64,000 nucleotides of DNA from Paragordius varius. Its lineage: Eukaryota; Animalia; Nematomorpha. The notes beneath the pieces were generated by a model. It did not search any database. It worked only from the letters and a program-made list of their open reading frames with translations, and had not been told where the DNA came from. The stretch lies in contig OZ176053.1 in assembly GCA_964247055.1 (NCBI GenBank), forward strand, positions 868,001 to 932,000. The letters are read 5' to 3'. Shown in pieces: positions 1,162 to 43,015 of this stretch; the first letter of the stretch is position 1; each line of letters begins with the position of its first letter. The position numbers and the translations under genes were made by a program.

Positions 1162-1674
1162 CTAATGAGGTTCAGGTTTATGGCCATCGACATAAAAATT
1201 GCGCGTTGCTGGTGGCAACGTGACAGTTAGTCCTTCCAGGTCATGGCTCAGAATGATTTGACAGCTGAGTCGAGAGGTGGGCCGAAGGAATGCAGCTAAA
1301 TCTAACATGTCTTCCTCCGCGTCCTCAGGTGCTGGCAATTTATCAAAGAATTTGGGATCAACGTACACGTGACAGGTAGAACAAGCAAGAGATGCTTCAC
1401 AAGCGCCCTCAATTTCAATTTTGTAACGATGAGCCAAATACATAAGATTATCTCCAACTTTACCTTTCACTTTGTGTTCCGTGCCATTTTTATCGATATA
1501 AGTGACATTTACAATGTCATCCGGTGATTTAGGATCTTGCATTTCATATTCACCTGATAAAAGACGTGATGTAGTGAATAAAAATCTTTTTGGTAAAATA
1601 GTTGATAAGTAAGCATAATTGTACAGAAATGAATAATGTTTCTTTGGTGATAAGTATCGAAAAAATTTAATCAT
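1162..1674 (-). CDS. FDX2: Mitochondrial adrenodoxin-type [2Fe-2S] ferredoxin (FDX2/FDX1L clade), intronless, ~170 aa
   Basis: ORF contains GACEASLACSTCHV and RLSCQ cluster ligands, EEDMLDLA, and the FDX2-type C-terminus NFYVDGHKPEPH. The first in-frame ATG is at 1674 (the track start at 1743 is GTG) and begins an Arg/Lys/Ser-rich, acid-free presequence-like stretch. Confidence 0.95.
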   Translation of the reverse strand: MIKFFRYLSPKKHYSFLYNYAYLSTILPKRFLFTTSRLLSGEYEMQDPKSPDDIVNVTYIDKNGTEHKVKGKVGDNLMYLAHRYKIEIEGACEASLACSTCHVYVDPKFFDKLPAPEDAEEDMLDLAAFLRPTSRLSCQIILSHDLEGLTVTLPPATRNFYVDGHKPEPH

Positions 1675-1795
1675 AAATGTCCATCGGCATATATCCACAC
1701 TCAACTTTTTTGAAATAAAACCAAAAAATAAATGGCAAAACACATGATACTTTGCTAAAATTTATGATAGTAAAATCCATAAAATATGAATTTTA
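1675..1795. promoter_or_regulatory. Putative bidirectional promoter between FDX2 and the upstream TGR exon
   Basis: Only 121 bp separate the divergent ATGs (1674 minus, 1796 plus). Inferred from gene geometry; no specific motif identified. Confidence 0.55.
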
Positions 1796-2159: not shown

Positions 2160-12537
<10,378 letters not shown>

Positions 12538-15285: not shown

Positions 15286-16524
15286 ATGAAGTTACAAAAA
15301 CCGACAATCCTCATATACGGAGACAATGAAAATGTAAATGCAAAAATTATTCATGCCTTAGCTATTGTATTTGTGTTTGGTGTGATTGGGAACATTGTTA
15401 TATTGGCCATTGTTTTGAGCGAAAAACACGGCACAATAAATGATTCTCGGCGTAAATTCCGCCATTGTATCGTCTACATTGCAAGTTTATCCATCACACT
15501 TTTTTGTTTTATGCTCACTTGGGTCAATCACGATATGAAAAGACCGCAAAAAACGCATTCCCTCAGATCGGCATATTGGTTTGCTCATGTGGATTGGTTT
15601 GTGGAGGACATTTTACTAACCATTATAAATTATGTGTTATGTTACATGGCAATTGATCGAATGTTGGCTACGGTTAAGCCGGTGTTTTATCTCAATTACA
15701 TGACGGTGAAAACGTTAAATATTGTCATTGCTTGCATATTTGTCGGGAGTGTCACCATGTCGATTCCTCTCATTTTTTATTACCAAGTTTTTCGAATCTT
15801 CATAAGTCCTGTAACACTCCGCATTGAATACTTGGTAGGTTTAAGTCCCAAAGTATGGACATCAGCCCAATCGAAAACTGTAATGTCTCTCCTACCAAAG
15901 GGTCCGGAAACAGCATTTTATTTTTCTAATGATTTCTTCACGAATGCCACAACAATGAACAATCAAAGCAGCGTTCATTATATTAGACAATATATGGTGC
16001 TCGCTAACAATAACGTAGCTCACTTTTCCCTTGTGTACGATCGCTGGTCTGGCGTCATAAATGATTTAGTTCCTACTCTTATATTAATCACATGTAATTT
16101 AGTTACACTTTTTGGCTTGTGTCGTCGATTTAGGAGACAAAAAAACCGTATACTAGCTTCAGGCATGTTACCTAATCAACAACACAGCATTATTGTGTTT
16201 AACGTGGGCAATTCACCAACTTCGATGGAGACCGCACAAGATAACACAACTGAAAGCAAAATTCAATCAATCCGCACTAAAAACCGAGATTTAACTCTAA
16301 TGACCCTAGTTTTAAGTCTGACTGCCCTTATATTTTCAACACCATGGACCATTTACGTATTCATGAAGAATAAGGCTTGGACCGACGGGCTTATAGATGA
16401 ACGTCCCTACCTGCAATTCCTAGTTTATGTAATGTTATATGGTCAATACAGTATCTATCCCTACATTATTATATCAACTACACCCCATTTCAGGCATAAG
16501 ATTGCACAAACGCTACATATATAA
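15286..16524 (+). CDS. Intronless orphan class A (rhodopsin-like) 7TM receptor, 412 aa, divergent invertebrate peptide/chemoreceptor type
   Basis: Seven hydrophobic segments; TM1 GVIGNIVIL, TM3 MAIDRMLATVKP (DRY-like), TM4 SIP, TM5 DLVPTLILITCN, TM6 IFSTPW, TM7 SIYPYIII and an amphipathic helix 8 (PHFRHKIAQTL). Confidence 0.88.
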   Translation: MKLQKPTILIYGDNENVNAKIIHALAIVFVFGVIGNIVILAIVLSEKHGTINDSRRKFRHCIVYIASLSITLFCFMLTWVNHDMKRPQKTHSLRSAYWFAHVDWFVEDILLTIINYVLCYMAIDRMLATVKPVFYLNYMTVKTLNIVIACIFVGSVTMSIPLIFYYQVFRIFISPVTLRIEYLVGLSPKVWTSAQSKTVMSLLPKGPETAFYFSNDFFTNATTMNNQSSVHYIRQYMVLANNNVAHFSLVYDRWSGVINDLVPTLILITCNLVTLFGLCRRFRRQKNRILASGMLPNQQHSIIVFNVGNSPTSMETAQDNTTESKIQSIRTKNRDLTLMTLVLSLTALIFSTPWTIYVFMKNKAWTDGLIDERPYLQFLVYVMLYGQYSIYPYIIISTTPHFRHKIAQTLHI

Positions 16525-17043: not shown

Positions 17044-20000
17044 TCATTTCCTAAAATATGACAAGGTGTATCTCACGGTGACAGGAAATTGACTGTAAAG
17101 TCTTTTAACCTAAATATATAACATAAATTAAATATTAAATATTCCGTTTTTATTAATTATTTGATATAAGAAAAAAAATTTACTCCAATTTTAAGTGGTT
17201 TCGTTAAAAGATTAGCGGTTACAGAAAACATATCATTCCCGTAAGCATAAATAACTTCACCCTTGAAACCGGGTTGAATAGGTTTCCCATCAAACTCAAT
17301 ATCTACATAAATGATAAAATAAATACAGTAAAAATTGAAATTATAATATGGACAAAATGTAACAATATAAAGACAAATATCTTTTTTCTAAAAGACAACC
17401 ATACTTTTTAATACCTTAATTTTTTATTTAAAATATATAATTACCACTGTAAAATATATAATTAAACCAAAATACATCTCAAATCAAATTTAAACCATAA
17501 TATAAATTTAAAAAAACAAGTCCTTAAAAAAAATATATTTGTTTTATAATTTTTGCGTTTTGTTTGTATATTCCTATTTTTACTGTATTTGTGGCAAATT
17601 TAGATAATCATTTAAAGCACATTAAGGTTCTTTAAGTTTTTTATCATTTTATTTTAATCGAATGTTAGTTTAGCATATCTTATATTTTTGAACAGTTAGA
17701 GATATTTTTAAAATTTGCCTTAACAATTTGCGACAATTTTCTGGCTTAGATTGAATTTAAATATAAATATATCAAAAGTATACCTATTTTTTAATTTAAT
17801 TTTTTTCTAAATTCGAGGTAAAGAAGTATGGCCGCTCTTACTCGTTATGATTTGTCTTTTTACCTTTAATTTTTACTGTAAATTATAGCTTGTCAGCTGT
17901 TTATAGCAGAGATGGTCAAAACAAATGGCTTTTATGGGCCGCATTTTTTTATTATATCTGGGCATTTATTACATATTTTATTGAATTTCAAACATAAGAG
18001 TATAAGAAAAACATAATTTTTATAGTTAGTTGCCGATTAGAAAAACATATTTAGATTTTGTAAAAAAATTTTTTTTTTACTAATTACGATATTTTTGTTA
18101 AACATCCTATTTGCAATACCCTTATCCTTACAAGTTTAAACTTGAACAAGTCAACAATTAAGATTAAATTTATACAATTAAATAAATAACATAATTATCA
18201 TATCTTATACGGGGATAGTATTTGGGAATTTCTCCAAAGCTATCTTGATGTTTTTCAGCAGGAGCATGCCACGATATAAAGGAATCTCCTGGTTTAAGTT
18301 CTGCCAATATCTTTACCACTTCTAAAAATACATTATATAAATTGAGATATTATACAGACAAAACGTAAAAACTAAAAGGCAACCACAGTTGTCAAACCTT
18401 GATTCTATTAAATATAACTCAAATAGATAGAAATGTCTCTCATTTGTACATGTGAGAAAGATCAAAATTCACAAAAGTATGATTGCCTTTTGTTTTTTTT
18501 AAAAAAAATGGTTTTTTTAGATTTTAAATTTATATGTGTCTAATTTCAATTTTTACTGTAAAATAGTATACAGTCCCAAATCGGGATATACGCCGTAAAG
18601 CCAATTAAAAAGTAATTTACAAATTTAAAGATGAGAAACACCCTAATTCCATGTCTTATTGGGCAGGGAAGGTTAAAGTTTTCATTCTTATGGTAAAGCA
18701 ATTTAAGTCTAAACAAAAGAGTCAAAAATCAAAATTTTTTATAAATTTATTTATAAAAACAAGGTATGAAAACGTGAAAAAAAAGTTTCTACTTTATATT
18801 ATTACTAAAATATGATTTTTTTCAACAGATTTTTAAAATATAACCTTTTCTTTAATGGTACTAACTAATGAAAAAACATGTAGAATGGTAACAAACTCAA
18901 TTTAAAAATTCACGTCTGTAATCTTATAGGTTGTGGTTATAATGAACAAGGTATTTATTTATCTTAAAAGAAATTTTTGTTTTTCTTTATAAGGAATACT
19001 TGTGTCTGATTTCTCTAAAACAAGCTCTTCCGTAACTTGAACTTTTTCACAAGTGTCGTTTTTTCCCCCACAAACACCACACCCATCTACTACCAATTCC
19101 GAAAATAATTGGTCATCGCATCCAATACTCTAAAACATATTTTTAGTATATCACACAGTAAAAAATGAAAATACAGACAATATGTAAAAAAATATATTTT
19201 TTGAAACTTGATTTTTTTTCTTCTTAATTACAGTAAGAATCGAAATTTAATATGGACAAAAGGTAAAAACATAAAGACAAATCTTTTTTCAGACGACAAT
19301 AACCAAACTTTTTTAACCTTGATTTTTTTTCTATTTAAATTTTTTAATTACATAAAATATGTAATTGATTGTGTTAGCAATTTACATTCTATATCCTACT
19401 ATTTGGAATACTCATATAAGGTATCTAGGGACCCCAGACATATTTAGGTTAATATTTCAAAATTTACTGAAAGATACGGTTCTAATTTAAATTTATACGT
19501 CTATCCTAATAAAAATTATATAAAAACACCAAAATATTTTAAAAAATTTAGTTTTAAATAGAGTTCCATATCAAACTACTTCAGCACCATTTTTATTTTA
19601 TAACACTTTGCAGAATATCGTGTAAAATAAGTAATATCACGTTTTTTTTTAATTGAATCGTTTTATATATTTAAAAGCCTTCATCTTATATAAGTGCAAA
19701 CTTTTGCAATTTTTTAAATTTGCTCCATATTAGAAATATTTGCTTTTAAACAGACCTGGGTCCCCCAGTGTTGTATCCAAGTGTTAAATAATGAGCTTTA
19801 TAAAAAAACATCAATTGTTTAAAAAGTATAGCAGCAGTCTTTTAAATAAAATATTTGTCTTTATGGTTTTACGTTTCGTCTGTATAAAATTCCAATTTTT
19901 ACTTTTATGTAAATTTTTTTATTACACTAAATTATATACAATTGGCTGGCCATTTAAACAAATATATCGTCGATTATTTTCCTGCAAAAAGGTTCCGTCC

Positions 20001-21313
20001 GAAGCCATTCTTTCGTACAAAACTTCGTTTTGATAATTTTCACAGTAAACCATACATTGTGTTGAACCTAAAAAGTGTATAAATTAATGGTTTATATTAT
20101 ATGATAAAAAAATGTTTTGAGACAACAATATAAAACTATATATATTTTGAGTGATGTTTCAAATAAAATGTCTTTAAACAAAGGAGAATTTTTACAAGAT
20201 ACAAACGTAAAAATAGGTTTCCATTGTCAGTTATTTTATACATTGAAAAAGACATTGTTTAAATCTAAGTTTAATTTTGATTTTCCATTTCATACCAATA
20301 AACTCTGAATATTATTTAAAGCATATCACAGATATTTTGAAGATAATTTCATATTAAATTAATTTTTTTATAAAATTCACCTTTGTAATTTAGAGTTCTT
20401 ACCACAAATGCAGTTGTGTTAAAATAAAAAATTAAATTTAAATAAATTTTAATGCCCTTATGCACATATTTACGACCAGAAAAATATACCTTACATAAAA
20501 TCAAAACCAGTTTCGGTTCTGAAAATAAATATACAATTATCAAAAAAAATAATTTAAACTAAATAAAGTTACGATTACTTTTAGGATCATATCTTATCTT
20601 TCGGTTTTGACGACATATTTCATCCATTGATAAATCACGCGTCTAAAAAGGAAATAAGAAATTATCCACCAAAAAATTACAATATATTGTAATAAAATAT
20701 TGAATTATACTTTTGGATTCTTGCAGAGTTTGGTTTGAATTCCGTTTCCAATGCAAGGATGGACCCCGTATGTGCTAAAATAATAAACATATTTGCAGTA
20801 AAAATTGAATTTATACAGACAAAAAGTTAAATGTACAAACTACTTTTTTTGGAAAAGACAACCCTACTTTTATACACCCTGATTTTTTGTGAATAAATTA
20901 TTAGAATATAAAATATATAATTAATGTCATATTTGATAAAAAGTTGAAAAAGTAGAGCGCTTTTTTGAAAAAATATTTGTCTTTATAATTTTACGTTATG
21001 TCGTATACTTTCATTTTTATACTATACATTTACCAATATAATTACTATTGATATAAAAATGTTACATTTAATACTAATACGCTGAGACAAAAATATTAGA
21101 TTAAAATTATTTAAAATAAATATAATTTTGCAAAATATTAGGTCTATAGTAATATAAAGGTTTAGTAATTTACTCTGCTATACAATTCCTCGTTCTCTCA
21201 GTAATGCCATATTGAGTGTCGCCTTTGCAAGGGGTCCATTCACTCCAATTATCCCAACTAGATTTTAGGTTTCTCAATTGTTTAAGAGTCATACATTTCC
21301 CCTTTACGCAAAC
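17044..21313 (-). CDS. ADAMTS-type gene copy 1: open ancillary-domain exons (end of disintegrin-like, TSP1, Cys-rich, spacer)
   Basis: Phase-consistent GT-AG exons on minus: 21313-21174 (VCVKGKC..WDNWSEWTPCKG..ERTRNC), 20774-20711 (TYGVHPCIGNGIQTKLCKNPK), 20642-20579 (TRDLSMDEICRQ), 20067-19940 (QCMVYC..ASDGTF..YICLNGQPI), 19129-19000 (SIGCDD..VDGCGVCGGKNDTC), 18321-18211 (VKILAELKPGDSFISW), 17302-17184, 17109-17044 (VKRLYSQFPVTVRYTLSYFRK*). GCD..DxCGVCGG is the ADAMTS Cys-rich signature. No start codon or signal-peptide exon was located. Confidence 0.88.
17326..17585. mobile_element. MITE family A copy with TA flanks (paralogue at 37320-37577)
   Basis: TA|CAGTAAAAATTGAAATTATA..TATTCCTATTTTTACTG|TA, inside an ADAMTS intron. 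Confidence 0.8.
19425..19783 (-). mobile_element. Older inverted copy of the TTAA-flanked element family (paralogue ~39424-39807)
   Basis: Ends TGTTGTATCCAAGTG|TTAA, the reverse complement of the 22456 left end; ACCCCAGACATATTT..TACTGAAAGATACGGTTCTAATTT matches the reverse complement of ~22930-23010. Confidence 0.7.
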
Positions 21314-21599
21314 CTATTCAAACAAATAATGTTAAAATTAAGGATGACAGTAAAATTTATTTTCGAAATGAGAAACCATACTTTTTTCAACCTTGATTTT
21401 ACGTAAATAAACTATTTAATTGGATTAAACCATTTTGAAACACAAAATGCAGGATATGATTTAATAATATGATTTTCTTTTAGAAAAAAAATTGTCTTAA
21501 GTTTTCATTGTGCAATATAAGAGTTGACATGTCGTCTAAATCAGTAAAATTATATGTCACATAAAATGATATTTTAACATGTTTTACACAAAAAAAATA

Positions 21600-22445
21600 A
21601 AAATTAACACACACTTTTCAATATTGATTTTCTAAATTATATGGATATGATTGATTCTTTCTTAGTATGCTTGCCATAAAAATTGGCTCATGTTATATAT
21701 AAATAGTTGAAACTATGCTTTTTGGTAATATTACATTTTCAAAACATTATTATGCATTTTTGTAAAAAATATAGACATGTGTTAATTCCAATAGAATTCG
21801 TTTTTGATAAGCAATTTTAACAAGTCAATTTATAGATAATTATATAATCGCAACGTAAAAAGACCAATTTACATCTCTACTTCATACTTTGCAATTTAAA
21901 AGAGTTATATTTAAAAAAATCAAGTTAGATTTTAAAAAAATGCTTACCATATTGATTTTACATTTGTCAGTTTTCTTTTTGTTTCATGTTTTGTCCGTAT
22001 AATGGCGAGTTTTTATATAAAATCTATTTATAAGCCTTACAAATGTCCAAACTCATGTGGTATGGTTATAGCGGTATTGAATCTATTGACATGTATGATG
22101 GTACAATTCTCCGTTTACATTCTTTCAAGATATGCAACGCCTTAAAATGTTTTTATATATATAAATTGATAATATGATATGAAAGTTTTATAATAATTAA
22201 ATGAAAACAATTGTAGAAAATAAAATATATTTATTCATAAGCGATATTAACCAAAAATATATAATCATTATAACAAGAGCATTTAAAAAATATATTTTTT
22301 AAAAAAAATTAAAGATTAAAGAACCATTCTGCTAAAATCCAGGAATTGTCCAGGAATGCTGCTAGACGCCTTTTTTGAATTTATGTATGTGTGAATACCA
22401 TCAGGCATAAAAAATACAACTTTAAGTGGGCGAGAATTTCTTTCG
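21600..22445 (-). pseudogene. Decayed M12B metalloprotease exons of the ADAMTS-type gene, copy 1
   Basis: Exon 22140-22041 reads GVAYLERM*TENCTIIHVNRFNTAITIPHEFGH with intact AG/GTAAG sites but TAA (22117-22115) where ADAMTS proteins have a conserved Cys. Fragments FYWN*, CFENVILPK and YNLENQY* at ~21830-21600 are broken by stops and frameshifts (lower confidence). Confidence 0.8.
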
Positions 22446-22455
22446 ATATCTTTAA

Positions 22456-23037
22456 CACTTGGATGCAACACGCTCATTTTAGTCCTTCGATTCAAATTGG
22501 GGTAGTTGGATACCCCAGGCCTGTTTAAAATCAAATACTTTAAAAAGTATCCAAGCAATCAAAACCATGGCAAAATTTTGCACTTATATAACATTAATAA
22601 ACAGAAATATATAAAAAATTTTATTCAAAAATACTTAATATTACTTATTTTGAGCTAAAACTGAAAGGTGTAAATTTAGCCAACGTGACATGTGTCAAAT
22701 TGTAAAATTAAAAAATAATACAAAATATACCGCTATTTCTATTTCTATCAATGTTAGATGTAATTTATATGAAAAATAAGCTTTAGTTTTACCCTTAAAA
22801 TTAAATGAAGACGATATTTTGCAAAATTTTTGCAAAATAAAAATGGCGTCGAAGTAGTTTGAGATGAAACTTTTTTTTCAAAACAAAATTTTATCAAGAT
22901 ATTTTGGCATATTCATATAATATTTATCAGGATAGAAGCATAAATTTAAATTGGGACCGTTTCCTTCAGTAGTTTTTTAAAAATTTTAATTTAAATTTAG
23001 TCTGGGGTATTTAGATACCCCAATTTGAATCGAAGTG
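22456..23037. mobile_element. 582-bp TTAA-flanked non-autonomous DNA transposon (piggyBac-like), present only in duplication copy 1
   Basis: TTAA (22452-55)|CACTTGGAT..ATCGAAGTG|TTAA (23038-41); sub-terminal inverted repeat CTTCGATTCAAATTGGGGTA..ATACCCCAG / CTGGGGTAT..TACCCCAATTTGAATCGAAG; the paralogous site in copy 2 has a single TTAA (42469-72). Confidence 0.88.
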
Positions 23038-24597
23038 TTAATATAAATGTTATCCCATCTATCCTAATTTATACCGTCATACTTAAAACCTTTGTATATT
23101 TTATACAAATAAGAATTAAAGATAATATAATGCTACGCTTTTATATTATCAACAAGTCATCTTTTTGTCGAATTGGTTAGTATATATCCATAATGAAAAA
23201 ATATTACTTACATACATTGCGATGTCTTTTTTCGTAAATAAATAATTAAATACAAAATATTGCAATTTAGTGATAGTGTTTTAGCGAGTTAATATACAAC
23301 ATATATTACGATATTTTAATATATTTAGTATAGTTACTATCTATATTCATCTAGTGAAACTAACTCAATTTTAAATTGAAAAAGGCTGAGTCTCCGCCTT
23401 ATAAAAAAATGAACCAAATTCCTAACCTTAGCCCATAAAGTCAAAAGCCTTAAATATTTGCCAGGGTATCATGATGTACTTTTTATATAAATATGATATA
23501 TTGGGTAGATGTGCGTATATAAGTCTATAAAATAAAATTTTTACCGCATCTTAAAAAGTTTTCAATTTAATGCCATAACATATGATTACCCTAAACATAT
23601 ATCTTAATTGATAAATTTAAGTAATGTGTTGATTTATTATAAGTTTAAACTTAAGGAGATATTTAGTTGGGATAATTTTTCGGAATTTTAAATTTAAACC
23701 TTCCATTAAAAACGTTTGGACTAATCGATTTTCTAGACAATACATAAAAGTAACTGAAAAGACAGTTCCAATTCAAATTGCTTTTATATTCAAAAGTATT
23801 TATAAATAGCCAAAAAAGATTATACTAAAGTATTTCGACGCCAATTTTATTTATGTTTTTTGCGAAATATCATGATTTGATTTTAACGCTAAATTTAAAG
23901 TTTATTTTTTATCAAAAAGATACAAACATTATCAATAGTGATTTTTGGATTATTTTAATTAGCTAATGCACACATGTCATGATGGCCAAAAAATTTTCTT
24001 GAGGTTTATACATTAAATAGGCAGTATCAAGATATTAAATAAATCTTTTTTTATATTTTGCTTAATAGTTATAATGTAAACCCTTCCACTGGTTTTGATT
24101 TTGTTCCATATTTAAAAAATATTAGATTTTAAACAGCCACTACTACTTCCTAATTTAATATATGATTGAAATTAATGTATTGTATCCAAGGGTTATATTA
24201 TTAAAATATGTCATTTAATAAATTTTCAAATTAACAAAGTGGTGATAAGCAGTATTTTGAAAACATAAATGGTCTACTTTGGAATAAACATCCTTAAAAT
24301 AATTTGCAAATAAATACATTAAAAAAATTTCATTAAATCTCAGCATTAATATAAAGCAGAAATCTCAGATAACTGAATGCCATTAATTTTCAGACTTTTA
24401 GAAAATTTTAATAAACTTCATAAAAATATTTAAATCCTAACCTATTTTTTTAATATTCAAGATTGGATAATAACATCTATCTAGAAATATTTAGCGCCTA
24501 ATATTAGTCTCATCACATAAGAATAATATTAAATATATTTAGCAGAACCAAATTATTTTTTATAAATACAAGGCCTGTTTTATAAATTTATAACAGA

Positions 24598-24712
24598 AAA
24601 TGCGTGAATCTCGGCCTGCTTCGCAGCCCGAGGAACTCCTGCGGACTTCTTTAAGAAAATGAACCAACTCCAATCCCTCACCCTAACCCTAGCCCACAAA
24701 CTCGAAAACCTT
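24598..24712. repeat. ~115-bp GC-rich dispersed element (two hairpins + four-tract C3/G3 motif), copy A
   Basis: Near-identical to 44344-44460 and to the reverse complement of 32495-32612. Confidence 0.9.
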
Positions 24713-25809
24713 AAAATATATCCTTTAAAATCTGATTAACATAATTAACATTTTTCACTTAAACTATTTGGTTATATTTGCTCTTTAAAAAAGATATCTT
24801 ACAGCTTTCTAAAAACGACTGGAACCGATATAAATCACTATTTTTTCAAAAGAAGCAAAAATTAATGAAAAGATTTAATTTTTATTATAAATTGTTTATT
24901 GCGCGTGGTAAATCTCCGTTACATGATATTTAAACAATTTCTTAATATAAAAATTTCACTATTTATTAGGACGGTTTCAACGAAAATGTTGCTTTTGAGT
25001 CTTGAGAATATTTTATAGATAATGCATTATTTAAGTATTTTCACAATTGAAAATAAATTAATTTATGGTAGGAAAACAAACCTGATATATATGTATTGCT
25101 CTATGCCAAAAGTATAAAATTAGTGTTTAATAATGTTCTCTTTTTAAAAAGATCCAACCAAGTCTTATCTCTTACCTTAACCCTTAGCCCTAAACAAGAG
25201 ATAGCCAACCTAAGCAAAACAAATTATATATGAATGATTTCCATTTAAAATTTAATATTTATTAGAATGGACGGATTGAGATACATTTAATAAGCATCTT
25301 TAAATAATTTTCACCTCCATATACATATATAATTATTATGTGTGATTGATCTTAATTTGTATTGGAAAGAACTTGCATTTTATTGTTAGATAATAAATGA
25401 ATAGTTATATGATTTAGCATTTAGTATAGATTATAAGATTGCTGGACTATTATCTTTTAAAATTTTATTAATAAGTAATATGATTATTAATAATTTTATT
25501 GAATAATTATATTTAGCATTTATATATACAATTCAAAGCTTTGAATCAAGAAAAAGATTAACCTGAAAATTGTACCTTAAATATATAAACCTCATCTATA
25601 AAATATTTTAGACAATTAATAAATATTAACATAAATTTAATTGTAAAAATCACTTATATTACCTATATCATTAACTTGATTTTTAAATTTTAGATAAATT
25701 TAAATTATAGGCATAACATTTATATATTTTATGAATAATATTTTTTAAATAATTATTTTTAGATATGCCATATTTTTTTTAACATATAATTTTCTGCGAA
25801 TTAACTTTT

Positions 25810-26090
25810 ATATCTTTATAGGCGCCAGCTAGTAAAACAATGTTGTAATAAAATATATTCTTATATAATGTTATATATGCACATGAGAACAAAAAGGAAA
25901 ACATTATGTGTGCGATCGAGCTAGGCGCCCAAACAAACAAGCGAATAATAATAAGAGAAGAGAGGGAAAAGCAATAACAAACAAACAGACGGATTTTTCT
26001 CGAAGGGGAGAAAAGGCGCAAATGCGCACTTTATTTTGATTGGTGGAGAGGGAACGCACGTGTTCCCACTCCTATATATACAACGAAAAA
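25810..26090. promoter_or_regulatory. Possible Pol II promoter-like island (paralogue ~45555-45830)
   Basis: On minus: CACGTG E-box, CCAATC, a pyrimidine tract, then GGCGCCTATAAAGA (TATAAA = plus 25815-25820), upstream of the minus-strand ADAMTS-type gene. These short motifs could be chance. Confidence 0.35.
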
Positions 26091-27049
26091 TTTAATAATT
26101 TTCATTTTTTATTTTTTTTAAAAATATTTTTTGGATACTTTGTGCGTGCATGCATGTTCCCTTTCCATGTCTTGTTCCGGTTACCATTTTGTTAACATGA
26201 TGTATCTGTTAATCAATCTCAACATCAACAAATCAAGTAAATTATTATATTTTAATTTAAAAGGAATTGTTAATTGTCAAAACAAGAGAATGTCCAAGCA
26301 AAACCTGGAAACAATCATTTTTTATGGGAAAAATCTCACAAATTAAAACAAACCACACATTGTATTGGAATGCTATGGTTATGAATGCTAAAACGAAATG
26401 GGAAATAGCTTAATATAATGCTTCCCTATGATTTATGTAAGTTTTGCATGTTTTGAATATACTTTGTGATTAAAATAACACTCTACTTTTGGTAATAAAA
26501 TACTGGGAGATACGATTTACATTAAAAACAACTAGTAGTTATTGCTTAATTTATTTTTGACTTTTTCTTGCTATTTTCTATCTGTTTTCGTTAATTTTAT
26601 GCGGCCAATTTAAACAAAACCTACCATCTCTATGTGTGTTGTAAATGTACTTTATATTATATGTTGTTTGAAGAAATGAAGAAATAAATTGAATAATATA
26701 TATTTAATTATATATTGTTAACAAAGTATGTGTAGCTACTCTATTAAATTACTATAATTTTAAATAATTATTTTTTATTTGGGAGGTGTAGTACTTGTTA
26801 TTCCCTCTCAAATTCAACCGATTTTCTGCAATTCAAAACAAAACGCATCTATATATCTAATAAATCACAGCAATTTGCAATTTTGGTGTATGGATTTTCA
26901 TTTCATTCTTTGACAATTAACTGAATATCTCAAATTCTTATTTTTTTTTTAAAAATAATTTTTATAAAAAAGCTAAAATCGTAAAAGGCGTAAGAAATGT
27001 ATCCGAAATTTTTTTAAACCAAAAACTGTTGAAATATCACTATATTAAA

Positions 27050-29150
27050 ATATTTTTTAAAAAACGCTTTTTTATCAAAAAATCATTTAAATTAAGGTTT
27101 GGTTTTTAATTTAAAAATTGACTAAAAATGCGCTTATTTTTTAAAAAATCTCCTAAAAATGCGTTTTCCTTTTAAAAAATCACGTAAAAATGTGCTTTTG
27201 CCTATTTAAAAAATCATAAAAAGCGCTCTCTTTTGAAAAAATATCCTAAAAATGCGTTATTCGCTAAAAATAAGCTTTTTTATTAAAATATCCTAAATAT
27301 GCGGATTCTTTTAAAAAATCTCATAAAAGGTTGCTTTTTTAATCAAACAATTATTGAAAATCAGCATTTTCAATAAATCACTAAAAATCGGTTATTTTTG
27401 TTTAAATTTCGCTAAAAATAAGTTTTCCTTTATTAAAAAATTCCCTAAAAGTACTTCTGCTCATTAAAAAACTTCCAAAAATGTGCTTTTTAATTCAAAA
27501 AGTCACTAAAAATCCGTCATTTTTATTAAAAATTCGTTAAAAATAAGTTTTTATTCTCAAAATGCGGATTCATTTAAAAAATTTCCTAAAAACGTGCTTT
27601 TTTAATCCAAAAATAAAAATCGGCCTTTTCACTAAAAATAAACTTTTTTTAAAAAAAATTTAAAAATAAGCTTTTTCTTATTAAAAAATCCTAAAAATGC
27701 GGATTATTTTAAAAAATCTCTTAAAACGGTGCTTTTTTAATACAATTATTAAAAATCAGCTTTTTCAATAAATCACTAAAAATCGATTTTTGTTTAAAAT
27801 TCGCTAAAAATAAGTTTTCTTTTATTATAAAATTCTCAAAATATTCTTATAAAAAATCTCCTAATAACGTGCTTTTTAAATCAAAAAGTCACTAAAAAGC
27901 GGACTTTTTACAAAAAATAAGCTTTTTTAAAAAAATCCTAAAAATAAGCTTTCTTTTATTAAAAAGTCTCCTAAAAATGCGCTTTCTTTTTAAAAAAATA
28001 TCCTAAAAAGTTAATTTACTAAAAATGCGCTTTCTTTTTAAAAAATCTCTTAAAAATGCGCTTTCTTTTTAAAAAAAATCTCCTAAAAAGTTCATTCACT
28101 AAAAATGCGCTCTCTTTTTGAAAAATCTCGTGAAAATGCGCTTTCTTTTTAAAAGATCTCGTGAAAATGCGAAAAGATCTCCTAAAAATGCGCTATCTTT
28201 TTAAAATATCTCCTCGCTTGCATTTTTTTATTGAAAAATATCCTAAAAAGTTAATCGAAAATTATCAAAAAATCGGTAATTTTTATTTACAATTCACTAA
28301 AAATGAACTTTCTTTTTAAAAAATCTCCTAAAAAGTTAATTCACTAAAAATGCGCTCTCTTTTCAAAAAAATCTCCTAAAAAGTTAATTCACTAAAAATG
28401 CGCTCTCTTTTCAAAAAAATCTCCTAAATTAATTCACTAAAAATGCGCTCTCTTTTTAAAAAAATCTCCCAAAAAGTTAATTCACTAAAAATGCGCTCTT
28501 TTTTTGAAAAATCTCGTGAAAATGCGCTTTCTTTTTAAAACATCTCGTGAAAATGCGCTTTCTTTTTAAAAGATCTCCTAAAAATGCGCTATCCTTTTAA
28601 AAGATCTCCTAAAAATGCGCTATCCTTTTAAAATATCTCCTAAAAATGCGCTTTCTTTTTAAAAAAATCTCCTAAAAAGTTAATTCACTAAAAATGCGCT
28701 CTCTTTTCAAAAATCTCCTAAAAAGTTAATTCACTAAAAATGCGCTCTCTTTTTGAAAAATCTCGTGAAAATGCGCTTTTTTTTAAAAGATCTCGTGAAA
28801 ATGCGCTTTCTTTTTAAAAGATCTCCTAAAAATGCTCTCTCTTTTTGAAAAATCTCGTGAAAATGCGCTTTCTTTTTAAAAGATCTCCTAAAAATGCGCT
28901 ATCTTTTTAAAATATCTCCTAAAAATGCGCTATCTTTTTAAAATATCTCCTAAAAATGCGCTATCTTTTTAAAATATCTCCTAAAAATGCGCTTTCTTTT
29001 TAAAAAAATCTCCTAAAAATGTCCATTTTTTTATTGAAAAATATCCTAAAATGTTAATCGAAAATTATCTAATAATCGGTAATTTTTATTTACAATTTAC
29101 TAAAAATGAGCTTTCTTTTTAAAAAAATGTCCTAAAAATGCGCTTTCTTT
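27050..29150 (+). repeat. Satellite array (~31-bp monomer), short version in duplication copy 1
   Basis: Degenerate CTAAAAAT(G)..TTTT..AAAA units from ~27050 grade into regular CTCCTAAAAATGCGCT(A/T)TCTTTTTAAAA(T/A)AT units by ~27970. Confidence 0.93.
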
Positions 29151-29221
29151 TTAAATTTTGTTAAAAAGTGGCCGAAAATTTCGTTAACAAAACTCTTTTT
29201 TATGTTAATGTATCATTTGTT

Positions 29222-30135
29222 TTTATCTAATCAGTTGTTTTTATAAATCAGCTGTCTTTATCTAATCAGCTGTTTGTATTTCAGCTGTTTGTATTTCAGC
29301 TGTTTTTATAATTTAGTTGTTTTTATAATTTAGTTGTTTTTATAATTTAGTTGTTTTTATAATTTAGTTGTTTTTATTTATCAGTTGTTTTTATTTATCA
29401 GTTGTTATTTTATCAGTTGTTATTTTATCAGTTGTTATTTTATCAGTTGTTTTTAATTTATCAGTTGTTTTTTATAAATTAGTTGTTTTTTATAAATTAG
29501 TTGTTTTTATAAATCAGTTGTTTTTATATATCAGTTGTTTTTATATATCAGTTGTTTTTATAAATCGGTTGTTTTTATAAATCGGTTGTTTTTATAAATC
29601 GGTTGTTTTTATAAATCGGTTGTTTTTATAAATCGGTTGTTGTTTTTATAAATCGGTTGTTTTTATAAATCGGTTGTTGTTTTTATAAATCGGTTGTTTT
29701 TATAAATCAGTAGCTGTTTTTATTTTATCAGTTGTTTTTATAAATAAGCTGTTTTTATTTTATCAGTTGCTTTATATATCAGTTGCTTTATATATCAGTT
29801 GCTTTATATATCAGTTGCTTTATATATCAGTTGCTTTATATATCAGTTGCTTTATATATCAGTTATTTTTATAATTCAGTTGTTTTTATAATTCAGTTGT
29901 TTTTATAAATCAGTTGTTTTTATAAATCAGTTGTTTTTATAAATCAGTTGTTTTTATAAATCAGTTGTTTTTATAAATCAGTTGTTTTTATAATTCAGTT
30001 GTTTTTATAAATCAGTTGTTTTTATAATTCAGTTGTTTTTATAATTCAGTTGTTTTTATAATTCAGTTGTTTTTATTTTATCAGTTGTTTTTATTTTATC
30101 AGTTGTTTTTGTTATTAATTTGATTTGTCAGTTGT
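29222..30135 (+). repeat. 17-19-bp minisatellite (consensus ATCAGTTGTTTTTATAA) with variant blocks
   Basis: Dozens of head-to-tail units with locally homogeneous variants (ATTTAGTTG, ATCGGTTG, ATCAGTTGCTTTATAT, ATTCAGTTG). Confidence 0.95.
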
Positions 30136-32612: not shown

Positions 32613-35298
32613 TTTAATTTTATCCTCCAAACCCTTCTCTCTAAATTTGTAGATTTCTTTTATTTTTCTAATTCTGTTTTTTTTGTTCATAATTTTATAC
32701 CATTTTAGAAGACTTCAAAATTTTATTTGTCTGCGAACATTTCAATAGAATCCTAATAATGATTTGTAAAGAAATTAAAGCCTTTTACATTTTCATGGGC
32801 TGGGTTAGGTTAGGTACAGGATTTCTTTATTATTTTTTATAAGTTTTACTTAATCATAAAATTGGAATTTGTCAGCTAATTTTTTGTTTTAATTTAGGAA
32901 GTAGAATTGTTAATCCCTGCTAAATTGTAAAGTAACTGCATAATTTTGAAGAACTGGAAAGCTAATTTATTTGGACGGTGAAAGCTCTTTTCCCAGCATT
33001 ATTCTTATAAGCTATTGAGTAACATTAAATTTGTTTTTAGCCTTTTTACGGTGTTGGATTGAATTTTTTTGGGTCTATTTAATTCAAGGCGAGTTTGTGC
33101 ACTATGGTTAGGTTAGAGTTTCCCGAATTATAAATAAGCCACAAAAACTATAATTATGCTAATTTTATGTTTTTATTCATTCAGAAACAAACACTATTGA
33201 CCGAGAAACAGAAAACAAAACTGGGACAACTACACAAGAAACAAAGCGAACTTACCAGAAGAAACATAAATAATTCATCTAGACAAGAATTAATATGGAA
33301 CAATCAATAATTTAAATATATAAGATTCAATAAATGATAAAAATGTTTTATTTTATCTTTTTTTAAAAAAAATTAAAAAATATCAATAAATATATATAAT
33401 TCCCCCCCCCCCCAAAAGGCGAGAAAAAAAAATTAAAAAATATTCAAAGTCCAAAACTTAATTTTGAGCGACCGGGAGTATGAGTGCTCAAAATGAAATT
33501 TTAGACTTAGGGGCCGACTCTTTCATGGGATAAATAAATCCTCCTTCACACGTTTGGAGAAAACAACTCTCTCAACATATCAAGAGTTGATTTTCCCCAA
33601 AAGAGGAAATGTTGTCCCACGAGAGAGTCTGCCCTGTAGAATGAGAGTTTGTTGCCCATCCAAATCATCCCCGAGTAACACGCAGGTTGTTGCATTGAGG
33701 ACCCTACCAAGGCTCGTTGTCCATCGTGGCTTACAAGCTCCGCAAAGGACGTCTCCCCACTAAGCCAATCCATACCTAAACATTACATTTACCTCGAAAT
33801 ACGTAGCATCCTTTTCACGTTTGGCTCTTGTCCATATATCCTCCCATCGATCGGCCACTTCCAAGTCCCGCGCATTCGATCTTTCCAAGGTTCTGGTCAA
33901 AGCTCCGCAATGAACGCCTTTTTCCCATAGTTTGTGCCAATCAACCTAAATAATACATTTACCTCGTAATAGAAGCATTCGTTTGGCCCTTGCAATCTCT
34001 GGTTTCTAGTCTTCATTCGCGTTCCCATCCCTTTCCGTATGATAAGAAGGCTTAAGTCCTTCAAAAATACGTTTCCAACCATCCTTCTCTTATATATTTA
34101 TTTAAATTGCGATAATAGGCGCTCAAATCACTCAATACATCTATATATTAACTTTTAATTTTCAAGCGTTAACATAAACAAAGTGTGAAATTTATGAAAC
34201 CGAGGGTCATCTTTGAGATTATCTATTTAAATATATTTGATTAAATTCACCAGCTTAATTCCTTTTTATATGCTCTCTATATGTATTTTATCAGCGGAAT
34301 TGGTAAAAATAGCCAAAAATATACATATATGCATTATACTGTAATGCCATTAAATAATTATATTTTAATTTGCACATGGAGCGCATAATTTCATTCAATC
34401 CAGCTGATCACTCTTAGTCTGTAAAACATATCAAGGTGTATCATGAAAGGGTGTAGCATACCCACGTACTGAAATTTTGCCCAGTTGCCAATGATTTAGA
34501 TTTTACCCAAATTGTTATTTGTATCGGAATTAATAGAAAGCTTTTAGAGCGCAGTGATATAAGATACACACACATCTTATGCTATAAAAGTATTTTATTG
34601 GTTTATAATATATCAAAGCTCCTGAAAGACCATAAAAAAGCCAGGCAAGAAACCCAAATACATTTTCGGATTGCAGTCTCTCAATGTGATAAAATGTATT
34701 TAATTTATGTGATATAATTGTAAATATATGCTTAATTTAAAAAATTTATAAACGTGATTTTTTTTACAGTTTGTTAATAAAAAGTTGTATCCATATTCTT
34801 ATTTTAGTTAATATATTATTTATATTTTTGTGTACTATTTTATAAAATGCCTTTATTAATAATTATATTTTAAATGAGTTTGATTGTAAATTTTAAGAAC
34901 CTAATGGTAATATATTATATTTTGGATATTATCATTTGTACAAAATGAAAATACAATTTCTAATAGTATTTTATTACTATCACCAATTTTAAAATTTAAG
35001 TTCATCTATATAAAATAATCACCTCTATTTTGCAAAAACTATAAAAAATATTAATTCTTCAAAAACAAAAAATGGATGACAATGCATTTCTTTATATCTT
35101 AACTTATTTATCATCTCTTGCTTTCATTTTGTGTATATATATAATTTTCCGAAAAAAAGAGATATTATTAAAAATAATAACATTCTATATTTAATTTTTG
35201 GATGACACCAATTATAATTTTTGTATACACGCTTGAAAATCGTGGCGTATTCATTTTAAAGTGTTTCGCAAAAAAGGGAAGGCAGGTAATGTAATGCA

Positions 35299-36537
35299 AT
35301 GAAGTTACAAAAACCGACAATCCTCATATACGGAGACAATGAAAACATAAATGCAAAAATTATTCATGCCTTAGCTATTGTATTTGTGTTTGGTGTGATT
35401 GGTAACATTGTTATATTGGCTATAGTTTTGAGTGAAAAACACGGGACAATAAACGATTCTCGCCGTAAATTCCGCCATTGTATCATCTACATTGCAAGTT
35501 TATCCATCACACTTTTTTGTTTTATGCTCACTTGGGTGAATCACGATATGAAAAGACCGCAAAAAACGCATTCCCTCAGATCGGCATATTGGTTTGCTCA
35601 TGTGGATTGGTTTGTGGAGGACATTCTACTAACCATTATAAATTATGTGTTATGTTACATGGCAATAGATCGAATGTTGGCTACGGTTAAGCCGGTGTTT
35701 TATCTCAATTACATGACCCTAAAAACGTTAAATATTGTCATTGCTTGCATATTTGTCGGGAGTGTCACCATGTCGATTCCTCTCATTTTTTATTACCAAG
35801 TTTTTCGAATCTTCATAAGTCCTGTAACACTCCGCATTGAATACTTGGTAGGTTTAAGTCCCAAAGTATGGACATCAGCCCAATCGAAAACTGTAATGTC
35901 TCTCCTACCAAAGGGTCCGGAAACAGCATTTTATTTTTCTAATGATTTCTTCACGAATGCCACAACAATGAACAATCAAAGCAGCGTTCATTATATTACA
36001 CAATACATGGTGCTCGCTAACAATAACGTAGCTAACTTTTCCCTTGTGTACGATCGCTGGTCTGGCGTCATAAATGATTTAGTTCCTACTCTTATATTAA
36101 TCACATGTAATTTAGTTACACTTTTTGGCTTGTGTCGTCGATTTAGGAGACAAAAAAACCGTATACTAGCTTCAGGCATGGTACCTAATCAACAACACAG
36201 CATTATTATAATTAACGTGGGCAATTCACCAACTTCGATGGAGACCGCACAAGATAACACAACTGAAAGCAAAATTCAATCAATCCGCACTAAAAACCGA
36301 GATTTAACTCTAATGACCCTAGTTTTAAGTCTGACTGCCCTTGTATTTTCAACACCATGGACCATTTACGTATTCATGAAGGATAAGGCTTGGACCGACG
36401 GGCTTATAGATGAACGTCCCTACCTGCAATTCCTAGTTTATGTAATGTTATATGGTCAATACAGTATCTATCCCTACATTATTATATCAACTACACCCCA
36501 TTTCAGGCATAAGATTGCACAAACGCTACATATATAA
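35299..36537 (+). CDS. Intronless orphan class A 7TM receptor, paralogue 2 (412 aa)
   Basis: Same motifs as 15286-16524; 10 amino-acid differences and an intact ORF. Confidence 0.88.
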   Translation: MKLQKPTILIYGDNENINAKIIHALAIVFVFGVIGNIVILAIVLSEKHGTINDSRRKFRHCIIYIASLSITLFCFMLTWVNHDMKRPQKTHSLRSAYWFAHVDWFVEDILLTIINYVLCYMAIDRMLATVKPVFYLNYMTLKTLNIVIACIFVGSVTMSIPLIFYYQVFRIFISPVTLRIEYLVGLSPKVWTSAQSKTVMSLLPKGPETAFYFSNDFFTNATTMNNQSSVHYITQYMVLANNNVANFSLVYDRWSGVINDLVPTLILITCNLVTLFGLCRRFRRQKNRILASGMVPNQQHSIIIINVGNSPTSMETAQDNTTESKIQSIRTKNRDLTLMTLVLSLTALVFSTPWTIYVFMKDKAWTDGLIDERPYLQFLVYVMLYGQYSIYPYIIISTTPHFRHKIAQTLHI

Positions 36538-37035
36538 CGTAAATCATACGGACAAAACGTAAAATGTAAAAGACAAATGTTTTTTTTAAACAAAACAACC
36601 TCACTGTTTTAATCCTTGTTTTTCTACATAACCTAATTGATGATAATTGTAAAATTTACATCTTGCCGCCCAAAAAAGTTTTTTTTTATAAAATATGGTT
36701 TAAAAAAGTATGGATGTTTTTATAAAAAATTATCTTTAAAATTTCGATTAATCGAAAAATAGCGAACCAAGATAATAAATATGGTTTTTAAATCATGTAA
36801 TAATTCTGTAATTTTTTACAAGTTTTGCTAATTATTTGCAAAACACTGCACAAAAAAACTAATATATAAGACACATCAGACATTTATGGTTCTACACAAT
36901 TTCTAAAATTTATTCGGTATTTTTAAAAATCTACTGTTTTTGGTAATTTTAAATTTTTTCATAAGCATTTAACAAAGTTGAAGCGTTGAAAGTTGGATGA
37001 AAGTTAAATAATTACATAATATCTTGAAAAAAAAA

Positions 37036-40000
37036 TCATTTCCTAAAATATGACAAGGTGTATCTCACGGTGACAGGAAATTGACTGTAAAGTCTTTTAA
37101 CCTAAATATATAGCATATATTAATATTAAATATTCAGTTTTTATTAATTTTTTGTTATATATAAGAAAATAATTTACTCCAATTTTAAGTGGTTTCGTTA
37201 AAAGATTAGCGGTTACAGAAAACATATCATTCCCGTAAGCATAAATAACTTCACCCTTGAAACCGGGTTGAATAGGTTTCCCATCAAACTCAATATCTAC
37301 ATAAATGATAAAATAAATACAGTAAAAATTGAAATTATAATATGGACAAAATGTAACAATATAAAGACAAATATTTTTTTTCTAAAAGACAACCATACTT
37401 TTTAATACCTTAATTTTTTATTTAAAATATATAATTACCACTGTAAAATATATAATTAAACCAAAATACATCTCAAATCAAATTTAAACCATAATATAAA
37501 TTTAAAAAAACAAGTCCTTGAAAAATATATTTGTTTTATAATTTTTGCGTTTTGTTTGTATATTCCTATTTTTACTGTATTTGTGGCAAATTTAGATAAT
37601 CATTTAAAGCACATTAAGGTTCTTTAAGTTTTTTATCATTTTATTTTAATCGAATGTTAGTTTAGCATATCTTATATTTTTGAACAGTAAATAGAGATAT
37701 TTTTAAAATTTGCCTTAACAATTTGCGACAATTTTCTGGCTTAGAGTGAATTTAAATATAAATATATCAAAAGTATACCTATTTTTTAATTTAATTTTTT
37801 TCTAAATTCGAGGTAAAGAAGTATGGCCGCTCTTACTCGTTATGATTTGTCTTTTTACCTTTAATTTTTACTGTAAATTATAGCTTGTCAGCTGTTTATA
37901 GCAGAGATGGTCAAAACAATTGGCTTTGATGGGCCGCATTTTTTGATTATATCTGGGCATTTATTATATATTTTATTGAATTTCAAACATAAAAGTATAG
38001 GAAAAACAAAATTTTTATAGTTAGTTGCTGATTGGAAAAACATATTTAGATTTTGTAAAAAAAATTTTTTTTTACTAATTACGATATTTTTGTTAAACAT
38101 CCTATTTGCAATACCCTTATCCTTACAAGTTTAAACTTGAACAAGTCAACAATTAAGATTAAATTTATACAATTAAATAAATAACATAATTATCATATCT
38201 TATACGGGGATAGTATTTGGGAATTTCTCCAAAGCTATCTTGATGTTTTTCAGCAGGAGCATGCCACGATATAAAGGAATCTCCTGGTTTAAGTTCTGCC
38301 AATATCTTTACCACTTCTAAAAATACATTATAAAAATTGAGATATTATACAGACAAAACGTAAAAACTAAAAAGCAACCACAGTTGTCAAACCTTGATTC
38401 TATTAAATATATGTCAAATAGATAGAAATGTCTCTCATTTGTACATGTGAGAAAGATCAAAATTCACAAAAGTATGATTGCCTTTTGTTTTTTAAAAAAA
38501 TATGGTTTTTTTAGATTTTAAATTTATATGTGTCTAATTTCAATTTTTACTGTAAAATAGTATACAGTCACAAATCGGGATATACGCCGTAAAGCCAATT
38601 AAAAAGTAATTTACAAATTTAAAGATGAGAAACACCCTAATTCCATGTCTTATTGGGCAGGGAAGGTTAAAGTTTTCATTCTTATGGTAAAGCAATTTAA
38701 GTCTAAACAAAAGAGTCAAAAATCAAAATTTTTTATAAATTTATTTATAAAAACAAGGTATGAAAACGTGAAAAAAAAGTTTCTACTATAAAAGACCATA
38801 TTATTACTAAAATATGATTTTTTTCAACAGATTTTTAAAATATAACCTTTTCTTTTATGGTACTAACTAATGAAAAAACATGTAGAATGGTAACAAACTC
38901 AATTTAAAAATTCACGTCATCTTATAGGTTGTGGTTATAATGAACAAGGTATCTATCTATCTTAAAAGAAATTTTTGTTTTTCTTTATAAGGAATACTTG
39001 TGTCTGATTTCTCTAAAACAAGCTCTTCCGTAACTTGAACTTTTTGACAAGTGTCGTTTTTTCCCCCACAAACACCACACCCATCTACTACCAATTCCGA
39101 AAATAATTGGTCATCGCATCCAATACTCTAAAACATATTTTTAGTATATCACACAGTAAAAGACAAAAATTATACAGACAATATGCAAAATATATATTTT
39201 TTGAATTCCAACCTTGATTTTTTTCTTCTAAATTACAGTAAGAATCGAAATTATATGGACAAAAGGTAAAAACATTAAGACAAATCTTTTTTCAGACGAC
39301 AATAACCAAACTTTTTTAACCTTGTTTTTTTTTATTTAAATTTTTTAATTACAATAATATGTAATTGATTGTGTTGGCAATTTACATTCTATATCCTACT
39401 ATTTGGACTACTCATATAAGGTATCTAGGGACCCCAGACATATTTAAGTTAATATTTCAAAATTTACTGAAAGATACGGTTCTAATTTAAATTTATACGT
39501 CTATCCTAATATAAATTATATAAAAACACCAAAATATTTAAAAAATTTAGTTTTAAATAGAGTTCCATATCAAACTACTTCAGCACCATTTTTATTTTAT
39601 AACACTTTGCAGAATATCGTGTAAAATAAGTAATATCACGTTTTTTTTAATTGAATCGTTTTATATATTTAGAAGCCTTCATCTTATATAAGTGCAAACT
39701 TTTGCAATTTTTTAAATTTGCTCCATATTAGAAATATTTGCTTTTAAACAGACCTGGGTCCCCCAATTCGAATCGGATGACTGAAATGAATCTGTTGTAT
39801 CCAAGTGTTAAATAATGAGTTTTATAAAAAAACATCAAGTGTTTAAAAAGTATAGCAGCAGTCTTTTAAATAAAATATTTGTCTTTATGGTTTTACGTTT
39901 CGTCTGTATAAAATTCCAATTTTTAATTTTGCGTAAATTTTAATACACTAAATTTTATACAATTGGCTGGCCATTTAAACAAATATATCGTCGATTATTT

Positions 40001-42171: not shown

Positions 42172-43015
42172 CTTAAAATGATTTTATACATATAAATTGA
42201 TTATATGATATGGAAGTTTTATAATAATAAATAAAAACAAGAAAATAAAATATATCTGTTCATAAGCGATATCAGCCAAAAATATATAATCAATATACCA
42301 AGAGCATTTAAAAAAATATTTTTTAAAAAAATTAAAGATTATAACCATTCTGCTAAAATCCAGGAATTGTCCAAGAATGCTGCCAGACGCCTTTTTCGAA
42401 TTTATGTATGTGTGAATACCATCTGGCATAAAAAATACAACTTTAGGTGGGCGAGAATTTCGATATCTTTAAAATAAATGTAATCCCATCTACCTAATTA
42501 TAACCCGCACACTCGATGCCTTTATTTTATATATTCATAAATGAGAATTAGAGATATTATAGTGGTATGATTTTATATTATTAGCAAGTAATGTTGTTGC
42601 CGAATAGGTTAGTACATATCTTGGTTTAGAAAATATATTTCCCATATAGAATGCAATTTTATAAATTATAAATAATTAATATAAAATATGGCAATAACTG
42701 ACAGTGCTTATTGCCAGTAATTTTCCAACATTTTGAAAAATATAACGATTGTGTAATTTATTAGTAAATTAGTACCTATGTTTATCTGTCCTGAAACTAG
42801 GTAAATTTTATTATAAATATTTAAAAAAATAGGCTCTGAGTCTCCTAGGAAGTCTTGAGGATTTCTTTCCACATAAGCCTTAAAATATTTACCAGGGAAT
42901 CATGATGTTTGTTTTTCTTATGTAAATATGAATTGCGAGGATTAAATATAAGATTTATAAATACCGCATCTTAATAAGTTTTTGATTTAATGCCAAAACA
43001 TATGAATACCTTAAA

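Follow-up and report, generated by a model that had tools for sequence, protein, structure and literature searches.

A candidate protease-less ADAMTS-like coding module in a four-unit tandem array of Paragordius varius

We analysed 64,000 nucleotides of the genome of the nematomorph Paragordius varius (hereafter the window; contig OZ176053.1, C4:868001-932000), with genome-wide searches taking in the whole assembly of 110.6 Mb in 44 contigs. Judged from its sequence, a region on the minus strand of this window represents the ancillary module that closes an ADAMTS4-type gene at its 3' end: it leads from the last residues of a disintegrin-like domain through a single TSP1 repeat and a Cys-rich domain to a spacer-like part and a stop codon. 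It belongs to a family of four copies, of which copy A is the locus under study, copy B a second one within the window, and copies C and D lie on the same contig outside it. Copy A may have arisen by partial duplication and persist under selection as a protease-less ADAMTS-like coding module, a reading for which we consider the chances evenly poised. The G+C content of the window is about 25% and the introns are short with GT-AG borders, as in an AT-rich invertebrate genome.

The eight-exon module of copy A

Copy A comprises eight minus-strand exons (E1-E8) between 21313 and 17044, with a coding total of 822 nt, i.e., 273 codons and the stop. That these exons join in phase, as an earlier note on this DNA had proposed, holds throughout: an AG acceptor or GT donor stands at every exon border, the phases are consistent, and the four codons split across junctions read D, S, K and H. 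The span given there for the gene, 17044-22445, contains exons up to 22140, whereas 22141-22445 holds no recognisable exon. E1 (21313-21174) encodes the disintegrin-like end (VCVKGKC) and the first half of the TSP1 repeat (WDNWSEW), and its protein is identical in A, C and D. The second half of the repeat follows in E2 (20774-20711), identical at the protein level in A, B and D, with four synonymous differences between A and B. The Cys-rich domain starts in E3 (20642-20579), which a genome-wide search found only in A, B and D and in which, besides two synonymous changes, there is a replacement (R vs Q) specific to A; its middle part is encoded by E4 (20067-19940), where all eight variable sites are synonymous and the protein is the same in the four copies. 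E5 (19129-19000) contains the Cys-rich end (GCD...CGVCGG...C) and the spacer start, followed by the spacer-like exons E6 (18321-18211), with only three differences among the four copies, all synonymous, and E7 (17302-17184), identical in all four; intron 7 has eight variable sites. The spacer-like part ends in E8 (17109-17044), likewise identical in all four copies, which has an AG acceptor, begins in phase 0 and consists of 21 codons and a TGA (17046-17044).

The module was said to end right after the spacer, and the TGA does follow there, the spacer label itself being positional. No further TSP1 repeats were seen, and the 520 bp between the stop at 17044 and the 3' end of a convergent G-protein-coupled receptor (GPCR) open reading frame (ORF) hold no ORF. 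Where a TSP1 repeat usually has CSxTCG, that of copy A reads CKGD, without the second Cys, and the same Cys is missing in an older paralogue, P, at C4:838-848 kb (CKGN).

Domain identity was examined with Pfam, PDB-chain and profile searches made exon by exon rather than on the joined E1-E8 model, an approach that is weak for short exons (~40 amino acids). E1, which carries the WxxWxxW motif of TSP1, matched TSP1_spondin (E=0.0026) and TSP_1 (E=0.0084) in Pfam, both as a half domain below the gathering score. E5 matched PF19236 ADAMTS_CR_3 over profile positions 90-115 (E=0.0015) and the structure chains of ADAMTS5 and ADAMTS13 in the PDB (E=1.4e-4 to 6e-3), and was the only module exon recognised by a profile built from paralogues on contig C2. 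At the exon level, E3 and E4 gave no Pfam or PDB match (the PDB search with E4 returned noise), and E6-E8 matched neither the spacer profile PF05986 nor PDB chains nor a profile of the genome's own spacers. The Pfam check suggested in the earlier note thus gave matches for the TSP1 repeat and the Cys-rich domain and, exon by exon, none for the spacer.

Copy A therefore has the central TSP1 repeat and the Cys-rich domain of an ADAMTS protein. The zinc site HExxHxxGxxHD and the Met-turn in an open catalytic domain are present in copy D and absent from copy A, which retains of the disintegrin-like domain only the last seven residues (in E1) and a nine-codon stub. The prodomain PF01562 had no match anywhere near the array in the exon-by-exon search, which is weak for short exons. 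The further TSP1 repeats, often with a PLAC domain, that follow the spacer in ADAMTSL-type proteins are also missing from copy A. By the test for an unprocessed pseudogene, E1-E8 of copy A do not qualify (no lesion; ratio of proportional replacement to synonymous differences, pN/pS, 0.04-0.17), and the active-site exon of A, B and C, E1 of B and E2-E3 of C do.

Tandem units, copy D and the protease remnant

The earlier note had described two copies, and the number must be raised: C4 holds four matches to E5, those of A (887001), B (906999), C (942807) and D (963981), in as many tandem units. The repeat unit of about 20 kb contains a GPCR gene, an ADAMTS module, a protease remnant, upstream DNA and a 31-bp satellite, and within the window the second copy lies ~20.0 kb to the right of the first, at 35153-42472, with 95.3% identity.

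Copy D (C4:961991-975876), the last unit of the array, is the only one with in-frame catalytic and disintegrin exons. Eight further exons lie upstream of its E1, with AG/GT borders at all nine exons of the chain and consistent phases; the catalytic domain starts within this group, which also has a 26-nt micro-exon and an active-site exon whose end reads HELGH. The following exon continues with L-MGAPHD and a Met-turn-like IMH, the motif thus spanning one junction, and is itself followed by two disintegrin-like exons, the second of which (Dd2) meets E1 in phase 0. The closest alignment of the active-site exon is with the ADAMTS5/ADAMTS1 catalytic site (E=0.05), all seven of its matches being ADAMTS, and it lies within the Pfam Reprolysin match of a paralogue at C4:8.04 Mb. 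Exon-level Pfam searches with the catalytic and disintegrin exons of D gave no match and the PDB search was blank for Dc5, the exon with the third His and the Met-turn. Prodomain and signal exons of D were not found by the PF01562 search or by tblastx of its upstream region, which shared only repeats, and no more exons, with paralogue P and with the upstream region of A. From its exon chain, D is a predicted coherent ADAMTS gene running from the catalytic domain to a stop after the spacer, with an unannotated 5' end. A MAFFT alignment in which D appeared to be without E1-E3 and the protease exons was ruled out, as tblastn located these exons beyond a 2.85-kb insertion between E4 and E3 (C4:965279-968129). 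In addition, four D-private replacements (T>K, E>Q, E>D, S>T) fall within 13 codons at the Cys-rich/spacer junction, equivalent to 18998-19032 of the window, and a single complex event might account for this cluster, as might local relaxation in D as the full-length copy.

Further ADAMTS loci were seen on the same contig and elsewhere. Paralogue P (C4:838807-848318, minus strand), ~20 kb before the window, has a similar small-exon structure and an active site reading HEIGH-L-MGVSHD; a reverse-transcriptase ORF lies upstream of it (853642-852803). At C2:1302743-1417803, a tandem array consists of 12 ADAMTS-type ORFs with ~10 kb spacing, each of which combines in a single long exon the Cys-rich end, the spacer (PF05986, E down to 1e-16) and TSP1 repeats; a TAA stands in one of these copies, and several have shortened frames.

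In A, B and C, the protease part is reduced to a dead remnant. The active-site exon of copy A (22140-22041, minus strand), reading HEFGH, contains an in-frame TAA (22117-22115), 16 codons upstream of this motif, and keeps its donor GTAAGG; that of copy B (42072-42171, minus strand) has a TGA, a C to F change and other replacements. The stop (TAA in A and C, TGA in B) stands where D has Cys-Gly. Six replaced codons and two synonymous changes separate the exons of A and B, which agrees with the earlier count, as does the stop in both, and the stop is placed upstream of HEFGH. The TAA directly after HEFGHL was rejected as an in-frame stop; it is part of the GTAAGG splice donor, conserved in D. 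Using D exons as tblastn queries, we found a remnant of Dd2 in copy A (21509-21535, minus strand) that amounts to nine codons followed by a stop in frame, and the corresponding stub in B carries a stop. The same searches returned no counterpart in A, B or C of the D exons Dc1-Dc3, Dc5 and Dd1. An ORF at 22316-22558 was considered as a Reprolysin exon and rejected: it had no Pfam match at E up to 10 and shows indels in B, and its 5' half, from ~22452, is a dispersed repeat.

The remnant and the 3' module differ markedly in their distance from D. Between the GPCR gene and a point 135 bp upstream of E1, identity to D is 92-96%, and it is 65-80% in the remnant (80% for the active-site exon of A, only 64.6% for the stretch 21510-21861 around the Dd2 stub), with a sharp switch at position 21448. 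Because introns are already neutral, relaxed selection cannot explain a 4-6x higher divergence, and the two parts must be of different age. The protease-less state thus stems from partial or chimeric duplication and later exchange between units. The earlier suggestion of a single gene decaying gradually from its 5' end does not fit the locus, which holds a family of partial duplicates next to a full-length parent.

Among the protease-less copies, only A has E1-E8 intact. The module of copy B spans 37036-41339 on the minus strand, with E8 at 37036-37101, E7 at 37178-37296, E6 at 38206-38316, E5 at 38998-39127, E4 at 39961-40088, E3 at 40604-40667, E2 at 40736-40799 and E1 at 41197-41339. Its E1 has suffered a 1-bp deletion and a 4-bp insertion, with a TGA and a TAA in between, and has lost the first W of the TSP1 motif. 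In copy C, the left edge of the 2.85-kb insertion known from D is followed by a 2.9-kb deletion that removes E3 and E2, leaving E1 and E4 out of phase. The array is moreover a mosaic: along 5.1 kb of the 3' part, B and C are only 0.4% apart, with A and D each distinct, whereas the remnant pairs A with C (98.9% identity) and leaves B as the outlier. In E4, four sites set B and C apart from A and D. Patches in which A groups with B, and C with D, occur at 18000-18300 and 20100-20274, and in the patch 20602-20914 A is ~9% away from both B and D.

Sequence change in copy A and its surroundings

In E2-E8, 10 synonymous and two replacement changes separate A from B (pN/pS 0.05), exactly the count given in the earlier note. 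The low ratio of replacement to synonymous substitution (dN/dS) between these copies is therefore real, yet it cannot show that both are functional, as copy B is broken in E1. To obtain copy-specific changes, each variable site of the four-way alignment was sorted by the copies sharing the variant. Across the four copies, E4-E8 (554 bases) contain 16 variable sites, 11 synonymous and five replacement, and non-coding sequence has 167 variable sites in 3266 bases (5.1%); A alone accounts for 50 of these, D for 53, C for 14 and B for two. Assembly or sequencing error is negligible as a source of the intron differences, since B has only these two private differences in 3266 non-coding bases.

Substitutions private to A avoid the exons: none was found in the 554 exon bases of E4-E8, compared with 13 in 858 bases of the 100-bp flanks (Fisher P=0.0015) and 23 in 1649 bases of the 200-bp flanks (P=0.0012). 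Across the gene, 36 indel events were counted in introns, 11 of them A-private, and none in exons. In E2-E3, where A-private changes are sites at which A differs from B and D, there are five synonymous changes and one replacement, and they fall in the divergent patch 20602-20914. These A-private changes postdate the last exchange with the other copies, and by then the remnant was already dead, considering that its lesions are common to A, B and C and that it is far older than the 3' module. As an exchange with D wipes exon and intron variants alike, it cannot produce the contrast between exons and introns, which we read as probable purifying selection on copy A itself. The per-exon dN/dS comparison proposed in the earlier note was made among the four copies without an outgroup, and its support goes to A, whose specific changes avoid exons.

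The neighbouring GPCR genes serve as a yardstick for a working gene in this array. The rhodopsin-type ORF of the first unit (15286-16524, plus strand), convergent with the ADAMTS module, encodes 412 amino acids and matches PF00001 (7tm_1, E=7.5e-7); its twin lies at 35299-36537 (plus strand), and further units have theirs at C4:939100 and C4:960268. The gene is intact in all four units, with pN/pS of 0.14-0.20 at a proportion of synonymous differences (pS) of ~0.055. An exact look-up of both GPCR proteins of the window in a public protein collection gave no match.

Repeats are frequent around and within the module; the genome-wide counts given for repeat families are first-look candidates. A dispersed repeat in intron 1 (20783-20920), which forms part of the divergent patch 20602-20914, has 331 of these at 75-86% identity, and its family also fills introns of all ADAMTS copies and of paralogue P. 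An insertion at 22452-23037 is present in A and absent from C, where positions equivalent to 22455 and 23038 of A are adjacent, and it ends the high-identity block near the upper coordinate given in the earlier note. Its first ~150 bp, a dispersed repeat from ~22452 (22452-22600) with 1988 matches at 95-98% identity, looks like a recently active element similar to a miniature inverted-repeat transposable element or a short interspersed element. A 31-bp satellite with higher-order structure occupies 28485-29155 (~0.7 kb) in unit A and 47525-64000 in unit B, where it exceeds 17 kb, and a 17-bp satellite with 53 copies (29212-30110) lies next to it. The left end of the window carries a 2Fe-2S ferredoxin ORF together with exons for glutaredoxin plus pyridine-nucleotide-disulphide oxidoreductase, of the thioredoxin-glutathione-reductase type, at 1162-1743 (minus strand), 2359-2712 (plus strand) and 7971-8402 (plus strand).

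Interpretation and relation to known ADAMTS families

In its basic organisation, an ADAMTS4-type protein consists of a pro, a catalytic and a disintegrin-like domain, one TSP1 repeat (TSR), a Cys-rich domain and a spacer (PMC4448532). Copy D has the same order from the catalytic domain to the stop right after the spacer, and copy A is 92-96% identical at the DNA level to the last eight exons of D but has no usable catalytic or disintegrin exons and a TSR without its second Cys. ADAMTS-like proteins, which include ADAMTSL1-6, papilin and Drosophila lonely heart (PMC3708815), share with copy A the cassette of TSR, Cys-rich and spacer-like parts without a protease domain. According to the literature, ADAMTSL and papilin originated from ADAMTS when the catalytic domain was lost, whether once or more often being unsettled (PMC10499240). 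Unlike these proteins, copy A has neither C-terminal TSRs nor a PLAC domain, no signal peptide was found for it in the upstream region scanned (21314-28000), and it keeps a disintegrin stub. Its nearest relative is the adjacent ADAMTS gene D, with 92-96% DNA identity including introns, and not an ADAMTSL, which points to an independent, very recent origin outside the ADAMTSL/papilin clade. If it works, copy A would thus be a protease-less ADAMTS-like gene that resembles ADAMTSL in architecture and stands outside that clade by origin. With partial tandem duplicates and unprocessed pseudogenes, the array shares a boundary inside the gene, mosaic copies of the kind that unequal crossing-over or gene conversion generates, and copy-specific indels and deletions (in B and C), whereas the exons of A show the pattern of purifying selection, with dN far below dS and less change in exons than in introns, a pattern not expected of a pseudogene.

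The course of events that follows from the two ages starts from an old partial copy, protease-less and with a dead 5' remnant, whose 3' part was later exchanged with D, or the reverse. This arrangement was then duplicated again into units A, B and C, of which B and C are probably freshly disabled, redundant sisters, and A most likely still encodes a matrix protein of the protease-less ADAMTS-like type, with transcription from a presumed 5' exon. In its fullest form, i.e., with A as an expressed and secreted protease-less ADAMTS derivative, a partial tandem duplicate no older than a few per cent of sequence divergence and representing an independent birth of the ADAMTSL type with D and the failed B and C alongside, we hold this account tentatively and a little short of even confidence. 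Of the two outcomes considered in the earlier note, both of which survive, an ADAMTSL-like gene in the making gains support for A, although one gene shedding its protease in place was not what we observed.

Several observations speak against a working copy A. Upstream of its E1, neither a start codon nor a signal peptide was recovered when 21314-28000 was scanned under stringent settings for exons that combine an ATG, a hydrophobic leader and a donor in phase 0, so that the exon joining to 21313 and the leader, about which the earlier note had asked, were not recovered in this range. A relaxed scan yielded one phase-compatible candidate ATG exon of 21 codons (21950-21888), whose ORF is kept in A, B and C; it is weakly hydrophobic, has three replacements in B and is conserved no better than its flanks. 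None of the 5' exons of D has a counterpart in copy A, E1 keeps two cysteines whose partners disappeared with the disintegrin exons, and no public protein or transcript fragment was met by a word search with E1. The assignment of E6-E8 as a spacer is positional only, resting on position, length (~113 amino acids) and the absence of Cys. Moreover, among the three protease-less copies only A has escaped disabling within the ancillary module, and because the units are a recombining mosaic analysed with no outgroup, the assignment of changes to branches is less safe than the P values imply.

Many of these points would also be expected if A, B and C were all non-functional relics, their 3' module having been copied from, or exchanged with, functional D only recently, and A merely not yet hit. 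The synonymous bias would then be inherited from times or lineages in which the sequence belonged to a working gene, and an intact frame of 273 codons is unsurprising by itself at a total divergence of 3-5%. No promoter, start codon or signal-peptide exon was found, the protease remnant is dead, B and C are already disabled inside the module, and the array is clearly mosaic with conversion-like patches. What this explanation does not account for is the distribution of A-private changes, namely the complete lack of substitutions in E4-E8 against the flanks and the 11 indels confined to introns, given that exchange with D erases variants of both kinds alike. We therefore regard this main rival as a real possibility that is somewhat doubtful.

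The modules of A-C might alternatively be 3' cassettes, or parts of read-through transcripts, served by the promoter of D, as all of them lie on one strand downstream of it, the E1 acceptor is kept in A, C and D, and the Dd2 donor has phase 0, as E1 requires. Such transcripts would have to extend over 25-85 kb and pass a 17-kb satellite as well as three GPCR genes of the opposite strand to gain cassettes that differ from that of D by only ~6 residues, and D has a complete module and stop of its own, which makes this very unlikely. Even less probable, to the point of being negligible in our judgement, is an artefact of assembly, with haplotypes or collapsed reads placed in tandem: B and C are 99.6% identical over 5 kb, yet the copies, all within a single 14-Mb contig, diverge by 3-5% in sequence and are set apart by the 2.85-kb insertion in D, the 2.9-kb deletion in C, the repeat insertion in A and the satellite expansion in B.

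Should copy A prove to be unexpressed, the locus would be an ordinary decaying partial duplicate, and it would then warn against taking a low dN/dS between young paralogues of such a recombining array as proof of function. If the reading of copy A as a selected protease-less module is true, the array shows one route to an ADAMTSL-like protein, in which partial duplication leaves the ancillary cassette behind a dead protease stub. With the parent, the candidate survivor and the failed copies adjacent to one another, the question becomes testable within a single species.

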